Shown here: piece after piece, positions 13,901 through 21,600 of the stretch
Position numbering within the stretch: the first letter of the stretch is position 1
Layout of the letters: every line of letters begins with the position of its first letter
From: Macrostomum hystrix
Taxonomy: Eukaryota > Animalia > Platyhelminthes
Length of the DNA: 64,000 nt
Direction of reading: 5' to 3'
Assembly (NCBI GenBank): GCA_950097015.1
Contig: CATNEN010000024.1
Coordinates: 4,526,001 to 4,590,000 of the forward strand
Notes under the pieces: model-generated
What the model saw: only the letters and a program-made list of their open reading frames with translations
What the model was told of the DNA's origin: nothing
Database searches by the model: none
Program-made: the position numbers and the translations under genes

Positions 13901-16900
13901 TTGCTAGCTATGATAAGCAGGCTGTGAGATGGGTTGCTAGCTATGATAAGAGGCTGTGGGATGGGTTGCTAGTTATGATAAGAGGCTGTGAGGTGGGTTG
14001 CTAGTTATGATAAGAGGCTGTGAGGTGGGTTGCTAGCTATGATAAGCAGGCTGTGAGGTTGGTTGCTTGTTATGATAAGCAGGCAGTGAGATGGGTTGCT
14101 AGCTATGATAAGCAGGCTGTGAGATGGGTTGCTAGTTATGATAAGAAGGCTGTGAGATGGGTTGCTTGTTATGATAAGAAGGCTGTGAGATGGGTTGCTT
14201 GTTATGATAAGCAGGCTGTGAGGTGGGTTGCTTGTTATGATAAGCAGGCTGTGAGGTGGGTTGCTAGCTATGATAAGAAGGCTGTGAGATGGGTTGCTAG
14301 TTATGATAAGAGGCTGTGAGGTGGGTTGCTAGTTATGATAAGAAGGCTGTGAGATGGGTTGCTAGTTATGATAAGCAGGCTGTGAGGTGGGTTGCTAGCT
14401 ATGATAAGCAGGCTGTGAGATGGGTTGCTAGCTATGATAAGAGGCTGTGGGATGGGTTGCTAGTTATGATAAGAGGCTGTGAGGTGGGTTGCTAGTTATG
14501 ATAAGCAGGCTGTGAGATGGGTTGCTAGTTATGATAAGCAGGCTGTGAGGTGGGTTGCTTGTTATGATAAGCAGGCTGTGAGATGGGTTGCTAGCTATGA
14601 TAAGCAGGCTGTGAGATGGGTTGCTAGCTATGATTAGAAGGCTGTGAGATGGGTTGCTAGTTATGATAAGAGGCTGTGAGGTGGGTTGCTAGCTATGATA
14701 AGCAGGCTGTGAGATGGGTTGCTAGCTATGATAAGCAGGCTGTGAGGTGGGTTGCTTGTTATGATAAGCAGGCTGTGAGATGGGTTGCTAGTTTTGATAA
14801 GAGGCTGTGAGGTGGGTTGCTAAGGAGGGTAAGAAAATGCACATCGCTCAGAAGACACTGAATTGAAGTGATTCGCTGTTTGTTGTGCAGCCGGCCTGTG
14901 CTCAGGAGCCGTTCGCTCCAGCAGCAGCAGCAGGAGCAGCTCCTACAGTCGCTCCAGCCGCTCCTACAGCGGCTCCTACCGCAGCGGGTCGAGTCGCTAC
15001 GGATCCTCGAGAGGCACTGGCTATGGCTCGCTGTCACTGCTCGTTAGCAGTCGATTCTCGTGAGACCAAATGTTCAAACTACCCTACTATGAGTAGCACA
15101 ATCAAAATATTTAAATCTCAAAAATGCTAATTGACTACGAAGTCTTTACCGTTTTTTCCTGAGGGAGCGATGGAGCTTGTAGCCCATTGGTTGGAGCTTC
15201 GGTGCAACTGAGATGTCGAGAGTTTGAATCCCAGCCTAGGGGAAACAGTTTATTAAATAAATATATCAGTGCTCAATAAGTACTACTGTGATTAGTAGAC
15301 TGACACAACCAGATTTTTAATTATTTTTAGCTACCGAGTCAACCGTCTGTCATACAGTCGCGGCATATTCTTCGCTACCTGGTCTTGGCGCAGCCGGCAC
15401 TCGGAATACTCCGACAGCTCAGCCATCTGCTTCAACGTGGTGGACAGCCTGCCGGCTGAGTACAACAGCTCAGTTGTGCAGCCATGGCTGTACAAGAGTC
15501 AACAGGTCTACGGACTCTTCGTCTGTCCCATCGACCAGGCGCGCCCTGATCGCATCTACTGCTGCGGCACCGAGGAGGCACAGAGTTGTTGCAGCTTCCT
15601 TGAGGAGTGAGCGGAAACAGCGCCAGGGTGTCAGGGAGCAGTCAGTAGGGTGTCAGGGAGCAGTCAGTAGTGTCAGGGAGCAGTCAGCAGGGTGTCAGGG
15701 AGCAGTCAGTAGTGTCAGGGAGCAGTCAGCAGGGTGTCAGGGAGCAGTCAGTAGAGTGTCAGGGAGCAGTCAGCAGGGTGTCAGGGAGCAGTCAGTAGAG
15801 TGTCAGGGAGCAGTCAGCAGGGTGTCAGGGAGCAGCCAGTAGGGTGTCAGGGTGCAGTCAGCAGGGTGTCAGGGGGCAGTCAGTAGAGTGTCAGGGAGCA
15901 GTCAGTAGAGTGTCAGGGTGTAGTCAGCAGGGTGTCAGGGAGCAGTCAGTAGGGTGTCACGGAGCAGACCAGCAGGGTTTCAGGGAGCAGTCAGTAGGGT
16001 GTCAGGGAGCAGTCAGTTGGGTGGTTTCTGGATTTTCTGTAGCAATCTGAGAAACAAGTAACATGCTAATTGTTATTCGTGCAAGAAGCCTTTCTACTTC
16101 GCAAAGCTCCATTGTTCCACTTTCGTTCTACTCGATTTCTAGTAGCGGCAAAGTGGTTGGCCTGTTTGTCGGACTCAGCATAGGACTGTTAGTGAGCGCT
16201 TTCATCGCATTCCACGTTCGGCGCTTCTACATCAGGCGGCAAAAGCTGGCGCGCAGGTGAGGGAAAATTTAGAGACGGCGAGAAAGGGAATGACAGACGG
16301 CGAGGAAGAGAATGAGAGACGGCGAGAAAGGTAATGGGAGACGGCGAGGAAGAGAATGAGAGACGGCGAGGAAGGGAATGACAGACGGCGAGGAAGAGAA
16401 TGACCGACGGTGAGTAAGGGAATGGGAGACGGCGAGAAAGGTAATGGGAGACGGCGAGGAAGAGAATGAGAGACGGCGAGGAAGGGAATGACAGACGGCG
16501 AGGAAGAGAATGACCGACGGTGAGTAAGGGAATGGGAGACGGCGAGAAAGGTAATGGGAGACGGCGAGGAAGGGAATGGGAGACGGCATGGGTGAGACGC
16601 TTAGGGATCTAATGAATGATTTCCATAGTTCTAAATTCGACCATCAAATACTGCAGTCGGCAGCAGGCCAGCAATGCAGTGATTGTCGCCCACATCGTTC
16701 CGGCGACAGCGGACGAGAGTTCGATCGCAACTGTCGTCTCATCATCGTTGACTCCAGGCCAGTCAGCGGCATCCGGTGGCGCCGAGTCGATGAGCAACAA
16801 GCCGTCGGAGCATCTGGGCGAATTCGATTACGCATTCGGGCAGCAGCAGCTGCCGCCTTTGCCGGCCTACCAGGAGTTGGTAACGCAGCCGGCCGAGCTG

Positions 16901-16966: not shown

Positions 16967-17024
16967 ATAACTCAACATATTAATAGTTTGAATGCGTGTT
17001 TTGCGTGGACGAACCGTAAAGCTC

Positions 17025-17700
17025 TAGGAATCGAAAAAACAGCAATTAGTATCGGAGATACTGTTTTAGGAATCGGAGATACAGCTCTAGGAATCGGAGA
17101 AACAGCTCAAGGAATCGGAGAAACAGCTCTAGGAATCGGAGATATAGCTCAAGGAATCGGAGAAATAGCTCTAGAAATCGGAAAAACAGCTCTAGGAATC
17201 GGAGAAAAAGCTCTAGAAATCGGAAAAACAGCTCTAGGAATCGGAGAAAAAGCTCTAGGAACCAGAGAAACAGCTCTAGGAACCAGAGAAACAGCTCTAG
17301 GAACCGGAGATACTGTTTTAGGAATCGAAGAAACATCTCTAGGAATCGGAGATACAGCTATAATAATCGGAGATACTGCTCTTGGAATCGGAGAAACAGC
17401 TCTAGGAATCGGAGATACAGCTATAGTAATCGGAGATACTGCTCTTGGAATCGGAGAAACAGCTCTAGGAATCGGAAATACAGCTATAGTAATCGGAGAT
17501 ACTGCTCTTGGAATCGGAGAAACAGCTCTAGGAATCGGAAATACAGCTCAAAGAATCGGAGATACAGCTCTAGGAATCGGAGAAACAGCTCTAGGAACCG
17601 GAGAAACAGCTCTAGGAATCGGAGATATAGCTCAAGGAATCGGAGCAACAGCTCTAGCTGCAGGAATGACATACTGAAAGGAATCGAAGATGCAACTAGG
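17025..17700. repeat. 21-bp minisatellite (GGAATCGGAGAAACAGCTCTA)n
   Basis: Tandem periodicity (GIGETAL repeat ORF) 3' of copy 3. Confidence 0.95.
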
Positions 17701-18688: not shown

Positions 18689-21600
18689 CTATTTCATATT
18701 GGCCAGTTCAAGCAAGGACATTCGGCCGTCAAGCAGCTGGTCTGCGGTGCGGACTCGCTTCAACTGCGGCTCAGAGGAGGGCACAGTGACGTCATTCTTG
18801 CCGGAGTCGACAGGCCGGCGCCTACGCTCCGGTTGGTCACCGGGCAGCAGGTGGCGATCCTCGCTGTAGGCCGGCAGACGACGCTCGGTTGACGAGGCCG
18901 CAGCGGAGCTGAGAAATCGAGACAGCACTAAGCCACGCCCCGAAACGGCCACGGGAGCCAGGCCGCCGCCGCACATTGGATCGGAGCGGACAGAAGCGGC
19001 TCCGACCAAGACGCCGCCGCTGGATGACGAGATCGTGGAATCGGCCCGCCGCTTGGCCATTACGGACCGCATGCGCGACTTCAGGCTGCTACCTTCAATG
19101 CGGCTAACAGCGCTTGCTGACGAAGTCGACGGCGGTGGCGGAGGGAGCTGGCTTGGTTGTGGAGCCGGCTGAGCGGGAAGGCCGAACAGCTCCGCTAGAA
19201 GGTCTAGCTCGTCAACGTTGGCCCCACTAGGACCCGGTGCATCCTCAACTATGTCGGCTGGCAGCGAAGAGGCAGGATCTACCAGCGGGTGTTCATCGAG
19301 GACAGGCGGCGTGGGCGGAGCGGCGGCCAAAGCTACGGCGGAGCTGCGCCCAGATCCGTCGCAGGTGAAGCTGCTAGATGGCTCTGTACGGTAGCCCAGG
19401 TTTTCAACTGCCGGACACTCCCGCTCAAACAAAATGGCGGTCAGCTGGCCGGAGCGAAAGATTGGCGACGCGGCCAAGTCGTGACAGGCCAGGCCAGGCG
19501 AGACAGCGTCGGAGCCACCGGACTCCTGACTTGGGCCGATGCGCATCCAGCGGGCATCTTTATTATTGGAGGAAGAAAGTAAAACGGAAGCGGGATGGGA
19601 AAATTAAAAGGCGATGCTTGAGTGTCTGTCAGAAGTGACTGATTGTATTAGAAGCACCTATATTAGAGACTTGCAACTGAGAATAAAATTATCAGATGAA
19701 AAATGTCTAAAATGCTTACACGGAAGGTAGAAATAGAGAGATAAGATACTTGCTTCGATAGCAGTTAAAATTTAGGTGAGGCGGCTGGCTATGTTGCAAA
19801 CTTCTTCGATCTCAAAAAACTTTTTTATATGCTAGATGTACAAGCAAGAACGCAGACAATTTACCTGTGCGCCGGCAGATGCAGATTCAAATTCAATTCC
19901 AATTGAATTCGGCTCGTAGCCGAAAGTGACTCCGCGATGGCCAGCACTTTCGGGCTTTGACTGGAAGCGCTTCGCCTCCATTGTGCCACTTTTTTATGCG
20001 CGATTTTAGTGCAATTATTTAAATAGGCGCCGATTCGATCAAAGAAAGAATGCAATATAGCCGCAAAGCCGGTCTCTTACTGCGAAGACTCGTGATTTTT
20101 CTAGCAATTTAAAAATCGTAGGCTAAGAACAGCCATACGAGTTGCAATTTGTGATCTTTTTTTGCCGTAAAGATCGGTTTCTTTAAGCTACAAGAATTTA
20201 GCAATAAATTTTTTTCTTTTAGCCGTAAAGAGGTCTGTTACGCAGTCTATTTTTTTACTTTGACTTAAGAAACTAAGGACTTTGCTATCCTAAATGCAAT
20301 GAATAAAGATTTTTATAACTCTAATCAGTTCATAAATTCATTAGCCCTAAAGACAGGTTTTAGTCCTAAAGAATTCATCTATGATCACGTAAAAATCGTT
20401 ATCTAAGCTGCAAGGACTCTATGAATGTTTTAGCCGTAAAGAGGTCGGTTTCTTACTTTTGAAGACTTTTAGCTCTAGTCGCAATTCTACAATGCCCTTA
20501 GAAAAGTGTTATTTTTACGTGAAACTTCCATCGTAAAAATAACACCTGATTGTCAATGTAGATTGCTATACATCAGAACTCTCTAACCTGTTTAGTAAGA
20601 CAGCTCGCATGCATCGATGCAGAAATCGAAAGAATTATGCTACGCATGAAAGGAATTCTGGTTTCGATTCGAAACTGGGATTTTAAAGCGAGACTAGATT
20701 CATAAACAGGACAGGAATTTCTATAGGGCTATGGATCGAGCTAAGTACTTTAGCATTAGAATTAGCTTAGATACATAAAGGAGCTGAATCAAATATATAA
20801 TATCACAAATGAAAAAGGTGGGAGGGGTAAAATAGAGAGACTAGATAAGCAAAAATGCCCATTATTGTGAAAGACAACACAGATAGAAATTGGCATTCAC
20901 ACTCCCCTAGAAAAACTTACTGTCTCGGCTGAATAGCCAAATAACATAATAAAATTGATTGTCAGGACGGGCCACTCGTTGAAGGGCCGCCGTGGGCATC
21001 AGAGAGAGGCCGTCGTGAGTGCGCAGGCTCTTCAGCGGCGTAGAGCCGTTTAGGCCGTCGCGGGCCTCTAGGAAGACGGCATCAGATAGGGGCTGGCGAC
21101 CATCTTGGGATCTGGAATGGCATGACGATAATAAAGTCAGGGCAGATGCACACACACCCGTGTGAGTGTGTGCTCTGGAGTCTGCGGAATGAGCAGAATT
21201 GCTTCTCGCTGTCTGAGGGTCTACCGTTACCAGTACCAGTGCTTATAATAATAATAACTGCAGTAGGACTAGGCAATGGCACATCATTTGGTGACGCTAG
21301 ACCCGCAGCCAGCGAGGAGGCAATTTTGCGCATTTCGCTTTGCTGACTACAGAGCACACACACACACAGGCAGACAGATACTGTAGGCAGGCACACGCTT
21401 ACACAGGTGTGTACATCTGCCCTGACTTTCTCATAGTCAGGCAGTGTGCACTCTCACTGTGCCTTGGAGTTTGACCCTAGAGCACAAGCCACCAAGCCTC
21501 CTCTCTGCGGCTGCGCCCCAAATTAATGTGATCTCGCGGAATCGAGTCAGGGATCTTGGTGCGAGAGGCAAACGCGTTAACCACTCTGCTACTCACCCCC

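Follow-up and report, generated by a model that had tools for sequence, protein, structure and literature searches.

The host gene and its third intron

The window, which is the whole 64,000-nt stretch of the Macrostomum hystrix genome that was analyzed, carries a protein-coding gene on its minus strand and, antisense to this gene, an array of sequences derived from the spliced leader (SL) exon. To place the coding exons, we used exon-by-exon alignment of L038, a spliced transcript contig from a third Macrostomum species (Logan run SRR28338165), which put the coding parts of exons 1–3 at 22662-21884, 21790-21656, and 21111-20921. Next on the minus strand are an interval of 1363 nt with a predicted donor and acceptor (19558-20920), and a conserved last coding exon (18689-19557) that is open in both M. 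hystrix and M. lignano. The last exon shows ∼64% amino-acid identity and a dN/dS of about 0.2 between the two species, and a homologue (P0004) is found in a more distant one. Since the sequence at 19557-18689 is in frame with exon 3 when joined to it, in M. hystrix as in M. lignano, the interval at 20920-19558 behaves as intron 3, and the array is located within it, between exon 3 and the conserved in-frame last exon.

The protein encoded by L038 (P0001), which is 74% identical to exon 1, matched the Pfam family PF15499 (Peptidase_C98) with 29.4 bits, above the cut-off of 27, while the M. lignano protein P0003 scored 21.1 bits and remained under it. When the M. hystrix window exons were scanned against Pfam singly (not joined), no PF15499 match was obtained. 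A six-frame search of the whole genome for PF15499 was also blank, but the controls were blank as well, and this search is uninformative. Judged by the orthologue P0001, which passes the PF15499 cut-off, the host gene is USPL1-like. Human USPL1 has a role in Pol II snRNA transcription (PMC3937775). A previous reading of the window, made from the letters of the sequence only (hereafter, the sequence-only reading), had described the SL-like copies as antisense to a USPL1 gene, and both the exon alignment and the match of P0001 to PF15499 bear this out.

The copies had also been assigned to an intron. This is supported by the in-frame junction to the last exon, with the caveat that L038, P0002, and P0003 all end past exon 3. 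The L038 transcript reads through the exon 3 donor to a conserved stop codon (window 20909-20907), and the M. lignano gene models P0002 and P0003 end at the same conserved stop just past exon 3. Because of this read-through, and because the M. lignano models end there, a short, intron-retaining form of the host gene probably exists, and the interval containing the array may also be retained, or be 3′ UTR, in the short isoform.

The SL-derived array in two species

About 20–30% of Macrostomum genes are processed via SL trans-splicing. The published leader is 35 nt long in M. lignano (PMC8629364), 45 nt in M. cliftonense, and 43 nt in M. hystrix (supplement of PMC10468722), and the 22-mer at window positions 20070-20091 is contained exactly in all three (PMC8629364; PMC10468722). 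The window contains this 22-mer a single time, against an expectation of 0 from shuffled sequence. The SL-like copies that had been proposed are real, and so is the match of 22 consecutive bases of the first copy to the published SL.

Six copies of the SL exon are present on the plus strand at 20060-20485, with starts at 20060 (the head), 20164, 20222, 20344, 20386, and 20433. Units were called by semi-global alignment to the 45-nt SL exon and compared with 500 shuffles per unit, and for each of the six units, only 0–1 of the 500 shuffles reached the unit's score. All five copies listed in the sequence-only reading were recovered, and the sixth, at 20386, had been missed. The 10-mer at the start of the SL exon has exact occurrences at 20164, 20222, and 20433, and a further one at 20344 that differs by a single base. 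Its count across the whole window is not above chance, but its clustering stands out. In the entire M. hystrix genome searched (220,453,370 bases in 42 contigs), pairs of this 10-mer 30–91 nt apart are found at this locus only, and there is no second copy of the 711-nt array region. The array locus is thus unique in the 220-Mb genome. A repeat or transposon family was considered, and is ruled out because the 711-nt region is single-copy. The setting is AT-rich, as had been noticed, with a GC content of 0.32–0.37 in the array region compared with 0.52–0.67 in the adjoining exons.

The head block (20055-20098, plus strand) comprises 32 SL-like nucleotides at 20060-20091, together with conserved flanks of 5 bases before them (ATATA) and 7 bases after them (GTGATTT). 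When aligned to a verified SL RNA gene, a check that the sequence-only reading had suggested, the head matched the exon of the type A gene (described below) at 30 of 32 positions, including 22/22 in the core. It follows bases 1–32 of the leader and then departs abruptly, with GTGATTTTT in place of the canonical exon end and GTAAG; the departure at this base had been described correctly.

The remainder of the plus-strand array is less regular. Between the head and unit 2 is a spacer or a fully decayed unit (20108-20163), which ends in seven T and, in the shuffle control, resembled the SL exon no better than chance. As a separate observation, 18 nt of this stretch (20110-20127) are similar to 20390-20407 (repeat family D5). 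Unit 2 (20164-20221; 0/500 shuffles) starts with the first 10 nt of the SL exon followed by CGGTTTCT, a variant that is also found in M. lignano units. Unit 3 (20222-20280; 0/500 shuffles) matches the SL exon start at 20 of 21 positions, is decayed thereafter, and has a positional counterpart 3′ of the head in M. lignano. It is followed by a decayed stretch, possibly once a unit, that was not significant against the SL exon (20281-20343), then by unit 4 (20344-20385), whose 42 nt are degenerate over the entire SL exon (0/500 shuffles), and unit 5 (20386-20432), whose 47 nt retain the CTGC.A.GACTC part of the leader (1/500 shuffles). The tail, unit 6 (20433-20485), has 28 of 31 aligned SL bases (1–31) with two insertions, and its 5′ part agrees with the last M. 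lignano array unit at 20 of 23 positions. Overall, the units match 31–35 of the 45 SL bases, with gaps, their AUG end is missing, and their spacings range irregularly from 42 to 122 nt. Tandem Repeats Finder reported no array at the M. hystrix locus, and for this reason we describe the array there as decayed and irregular.

Just past the tail unit, a perfect 14-bp inverted repeat forms a hairpin (20506-20545; fold z -2.3). The outer stem can be aligned in M. lignano, but a control intron stretch aligns equally well, making this weak evidence of conservation. A microRNA was rejected for the hairpin, given the short stem and an Rfam E-value of 0.23.

To compare arrays, we used two species, M. 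hystrix and M. lignano, the latter with two paralogous loci (L036 and L037) that represent two copies of the orthologous USPL1-like gene in assembly GCA_002269645.1; L038, from the third species, and L044 are Logan contigs that end before the relevant part of the intron, and the contigs of the third and a fourth species do not reach the array. Conservation in other Macrostomum species had been named as a check on the array, and both M. lignano loci were found to contain a head and array in the same intron and in the same antisense orientation as in M. hystrix. The M. lignano heads have the break after base 32 and the flanks seen in M. hystrix, and are followed, in order, by some decayed units, a homogeneous 45-nt array, a final unit, and a hairpin-forming stretch. 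The tandem arrays are minisatellites of 26.6 and 44.6 copies, with 92% identity, and their period of 45 nt is exactly the length of the leader exon. Of the first 24 bases of the M. lignano unit, 20 match the leader, and over the full 45 bases the number is 31. Every unit junction contains GGTAAG, which is a relic of the SL gene donor. Moreover, units of both species have CGGTTTCT in common at a position where canonical genes have CGGTCTCT, and we therefore consider them descendants of one ancestral array, rather than of separate insertions. On these sequence comparisons, the array predates the split between M. hystrix and M. lignano, and was built from the 45-nt SL exon.

Two coding explanations were also tried and rejected. 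In M. lignano, the 45-nt units yield open frames on the host-sense strand, but these are repeatedly interrupted. M. hystrix has no open frame here, and a word search that used the longest ORF of the array had no hits. An alternative host-strand coding exon starting from a CAG in the anti-SL head runs into stops within 3–13 codons and is not conserved.

Comparison with the SL RNA genes of the genome

With one mismatch allowed, the head 22-mer has 153 occurrences in the M. hystrix genome, and these fall into three groups. Type A SL genes, which carry the published leader, are located in an 11.6-kb rDNA-U1 repeat, adjoining a U1 gene. Type B SL genes, of which there are roughly 100 copies on contig 39, share a 927-bp repeat with 5S rRNA. 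They agree with the published leader in the 22-nt core only, and differ from it at the exon start and in the 13 nt of the exon end. The third group, the dispersed copies, mostly consists of the full leader fused to other sequence, as expected of retroposed trans-spliced RNAs; at the array locus, the leader is instead broken at base 32 and tandemly repeated.

The type A SL RNA folds into three hairpins, in which the leader is paired with the GTAAG donor (-34.7 kcal/mol, z -4.3). This fold is absent at the heads, which fold no better than shuffles (z -0.24 in M. hystrix and -0.5 in M. lignano), and a stem pairing leader and donor was not found at the head. A covariance model (R1) built from the type A and type B SL RNA genes scored 135 and 80 bits for the real genes and 13–19 bits for the heads of both species. 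The bases after head base 32 are GT in M. hystrix and TT in M. lignano, and so a splice donor is not conserved at this position; no splice donor was found in the M. hystrix units. The terminal AUG is said to close all known flatworm SLs (supplement of PMC10468722), and a complete 45-nt leader exon with this ending is present neither in the head (bases 1–32) nor in the units.

Upstream elements were also compared. A PSE-like motif, AC[GT]AAAA, located at about -75, is common to the U1, U2, U6, and type B SL genes, and is absent upstream of the heads. However, the canonical type A gene likewise lacks the motif, and for that reason this test is not decisive. No shared proximal sequence element was found at 19990-20050, where the sequence-only reading had suggested looking for one, and upstream of the head M. 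hystrix and M. lignano show no sequence conservation. Downstream, 3′ of the head in both species, there is a U-rich tract that resembles the canonical Sm site, although its alignment is ambiguous. Rfam searches of the window at the gathering threshold, and of 19600-20900 at E-values up to 10, returned nothing relevant, but this result is uninformative because the canonical Macrostomum SL gene, used as a control, was also missed. Taken together, these sequence features show that the locus is not a cluster of working SL RNA genes.

Constraint on the head and its interpretation

The head block (20055-20098) is identical at 38 of 44 positions, without gaps, to its counterparts in L036 (14012-13969) and L037 (14870-14827). 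This exceeds the nucleotide identity of the exons, which is 64–76% between M. hystrix and M. lignano. The host-gene dS between these species is 1.36–1.61, and 57–62% of four-fold sites differ, which is near saturation. Upstream of the head, no similarity between species could be aligned (the score equaled the shuffle mean), and the onset of conservation is sharp, falling 5 nt before SL +1. Downstream, weak alignments between species were obtained for the decayed units, but also for a control stretch taken from this intron, so that saturation of the intron is incomplete; the head alone is clearly set apart. Units of the M. lignano arrays differ from one another by 0.5% per site at positions 10–24 and by 6.9% per site at positions 25–45, which fits constraint on the SL-like half, although these counts do not represent independent events. 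Throughout, the best-kept piece is the type-A-specific exon start. Single units are not strongly constrained, since several of those in M. hystrix are badly decayed, and the M. lignano counterpart of unit 2 is decayed as well. The comparisons give good support to the view that this is an old, orthologously retained array derived from the SL exon, whose head has been selectively maintained and which is not an SL RNA gene.

The part that survives in M. hystrix and M. lignano alike is the 5′ module of the type A gene, namely its first base and the next 20–32 nt. We tentatively favor the possibility, which is based on analogy, that such SL-gene 5′ modules act as promoter or binding modules in an alternatively retained intron. 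The module would be read at the DNA level by the machinery that transcribes SL RNA genes, either as an intragenic promoter or as a binding element, and the head, perhaps together with the units, would seed the binding of factors, or the synthesis of short antisense transcripts that lack a donor, within the intron. Host output, meaning the short form that ends after exon 3 or the long form with the last exon, would then be coupled to the activity of this machinery, which is presumably served by the host protein. That factors bind, that antisense transcripts arise, and that the host gene is affected are what we infer here. Recognition by the machinery is favored because the 5′ module is kept, because conservation starts so sharply, and because the type A gene has no upstream motif; the absence of the PSE-like motif from that gene fits a reliance on internal elements. 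The link between the array and the function of USPL1 is a post hoc coincidence.

Of the alternatives, a neutral origin survives best, although we consider it somewhat unlikely. The array could be the functionless relic of an old SL minisatellite or a former SL gene cluster that has persisted through unequal crossing-over, with the similarity of the head kept by occasional conversion from the many canonical SL genes, or by chance. Consistent with this, copy numbers diverge, from ∼6 decayed units in M. hystrix to 27 and 45 in the M. lignano loci, Tandem Repeats Finder is blank in M. hystrix, and many SL fragments are dispersed through the M. hystrix genome. The 22/22 match of the M. hystrix head core to the canonical gene is also what conversion would yield. 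However, in M. lignano the core of the head departs from the SL at 3 of its 22 positions, so that no recent conversion has occurred there, and both species have the base-32 junction, the conserved flanks, and CGGTTTCT, which are missing from canonical genes. Conversion may account for the M. hystrix core, but not for the shared break, the flanks, or the core differences in M. lignano, and an identity of 38/44 at a dS of about 1.5 is far from the neutral expectation. The suggestion in the sequence-only reading of a decayed SL gene cluster was right as to derivation from the SL, but is too weak a description of an array that is orthologous at this dS and has a head more conserved than the exons. 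If the locus did prove neutral, it would provide a clean case of an exon-length minisatellite that originated in an SL gene and can be dated through its orthology.

An autoregulatory sensor was also considered, in which the SL 5′ modules, or the anti-SL strand, in the alternatively retained intron would set the amounts of long and truncated USPL1-like protein that are made. Its input would be how active the machinery for SL and snRNA transcription is, or how abundant SL RNA is. We regard this as unlikely. If it were true, an RNA that acts in trans-splicing and a factor needed to synthesize it would be linked in a feedback loop.

It is improbable, in our view, that the head or units work by base pairing, when carried on the host pre-mRNA or the short mRNA, with SL RNA or SL-capped mRNAs, and the consequences that such pairing might have, sensing of SL abundance or an influence on intron 3 splicing, are improbable to the same degree. 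In the predicted duplex between head and SL, 30 of 32 pairs could form in M. hystrix, compared with 28 of 32 for the M. lignano head. Of six lineage-specific changes, three produce G-U wobbles in the duplex, a proportion that is not significant, and the interval, at least its start, is present in read-through transcripts. The M. lignano units, however, match the SL in runs of 9+4+3+4 over the first 24 nt, with four mismatches that include no wobble, and pairing by the large array in this species would thus be poor. In addition, it is the 9-mer at the very 5′ end that is conserved best, and pairing gives no reason for that piece to be favored.

A trans-acting product is a decidedly poor prospect. 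This would be a donor-less, SL-derived Sm-class RNA, similar to SmY, whose plus-strand transcription would start from the head and whose role would lie in assembly or recycling of the SL snRNP. A U-rich tract like the Sm sites in SL RNAs of the M. hystrix genome (AUUUUU..AGCA) comes after the head in M. hystrix as well as in M. lignano, and after this tract come a small hairpin and then a T-run ∼100 nt from the start. But the predicted folds do not exceed those of shuffled sequence (the z values given above), the 3′ part is poorly conserved with an ambiguous alignment, there is neither a PSE nor a conserved upstream promoter, the covariance model scores are marginal, and the array would be left unexplained. 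Finally, a functional variant SL RNA gene with its own donor and a shorter leader ending in GAAGACTC, as envisaged in the sequence-only reading from the GT after head base 32 in M. hystrix, is scarcely credible, given that this GT is TT in M. lignano, that the donor stem, the three-hairpin fold, and a terminal AUG (cf. supplement of PMC10468722) are all absent, and that the model score is 16 bits (13–19 for the heads of both species) compared with 80–135 for real genes.

Control of SL RNA supply is not addressed in the flatworm literature surveyed, and the array offers a concrete handle on it, with SL 5′ modules situated inside the homologue of a Cajal-body snRNA transcription factor. Because M. 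lignano is amenable to transgenesis, the locus is testable.

The array can be compared with several known systems. It resembles the canonical Macrostomum type A SL RNA genes in the first 32 nt of the head (30/32), in the first ∼20 nt of the units, in orientation, and in the start base, and differs from them in lacking the AUG exon end, the GTAAG donor paired in stem-loop I, and stem-loop II, with a correspondingly poor model score; it is also a single, unique locus, whereas the type A genes are located in a multi-kb repeat. The SL pseudogenes and tandem clusters of parasitic flatworms (PMC12582326) share with it a donor that is not conserved and, as in M. lignano, tandem arrangement with concerted evolution. 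Those clusters, however, consist of whole SL RNA genes spaced up to kilobases apart (PMC12582326), in contrast to the bare 45-nt exon described here, which forms an array that is antisense within a protein-coding gene, is kept across species, and has a constrained head. Retroposed relict SLs, seen in this genome as retro-copies and in LTRs, are likewise leader DNA outside SL genes, but they contain the full 45-nt leader and an mRNA body, while the head of the array breaks at base 32 and its units are arranged head to tail with their own common 3′ part. Tandem relict SLs are known in dinoflagellates. The SmY RNAs of nematodes are SL-related and donor-less, with a hairpin, U-tract, hairpin layout that is possible at our locus as well, although no sequence or model match to them was found and the structure lacks statistical support; SmY RNAs are not known from flatworms.

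Returning to the promoter or binding-module reading that we favor, the closest parallel is again from nematodes, where Hannon and co-workers are said to have found in 1990 that the 22-nt leader of the SL RNA gene is itself an intragenic promoter element. No such element is known from flatworms, and an intragenic SL promoter in this group is an analogy drawn from the nematode case. If the analogy holds, it would explain both the sole retention of the 5′ module in the array and the type A gene's lack of a PSE-like motif.

A stop codon past exon 3 of the USPL1-like gene, and coding-looking repeats

For the USPL1-like gene, the sequence around the exon-3 donor was compared in three Macrostomum species: M. 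hystrix (window 20909-20923), the orthologous M. lignano locus (L036, 11920-11946), and a spliced transcript contig from a third species (L038, 1124-1137). An in-frame stop lies 4-9 codons past the donor in all three, and in L038, the sole transcript contig at hand, the donor is read through. This suggests that the USPL1-like gene has a conserved truncated isoform. Elsewhere in the window, the listing of open reading frames contained two long, coding-looking tandem repeats, one of an 11-residue type at 14020-14640 on the + strand, and one of the GIGETALGIGDTA type at 16988-17677, in the interval 16988-17680.

Upstream elements of snRNA genes and of the intronic array

The U1, U2 and U6 genes of the M. 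hystrix assembly (loci L045-L062) have in common an upstream motif, AC[GT]AAAA followed by 3-4 bases, at about -75, while a TATA box at about -30 is confined to U6. This motif is a candidate proximal sequence element (PSE) of this flatworm. It was not found within 490 nt of the rDNA-linked type-A spliced-leader (SL) gene. At the intronic array, a TATA-like box forming a perfect palindrome (window 20016-20027) is located 33-44 nt 5' of the first SL-like copy. In M. lignano, the palindromic box is not at the corresponding position, and a different AT-rich box is present at -29 to -19.

Dispersed leader copies and a second SL RNA gene type

At L003, L009 and L029 (and L025), a leader copy lies directly 3' of a reverse-complemented tRNA-like sequence and is followed by unrelated sequence, an arrangement that may represent a leader-associated, SINE-like family. 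Loci L005, L030, L039 and L040 form a repeated family, with conserved sequence on both sides of a full 45-nt leader.

The publications consulted describe one leader for Macrostomum. On contig 39 of the M. hystrix assembly (about 12,667,000-12,750,000; L033, 12667000-12670000), a 927-bp tandem repeat of ∼100 copies houses a second SL RNA gene type together with a 5S rRNA gene. In this second type the GTAAG donor is intact, and position -74 carries a PSE-like motif. Its 22-nt core is identical to that of the published leader, but its exon start and its last 13 nt are different.
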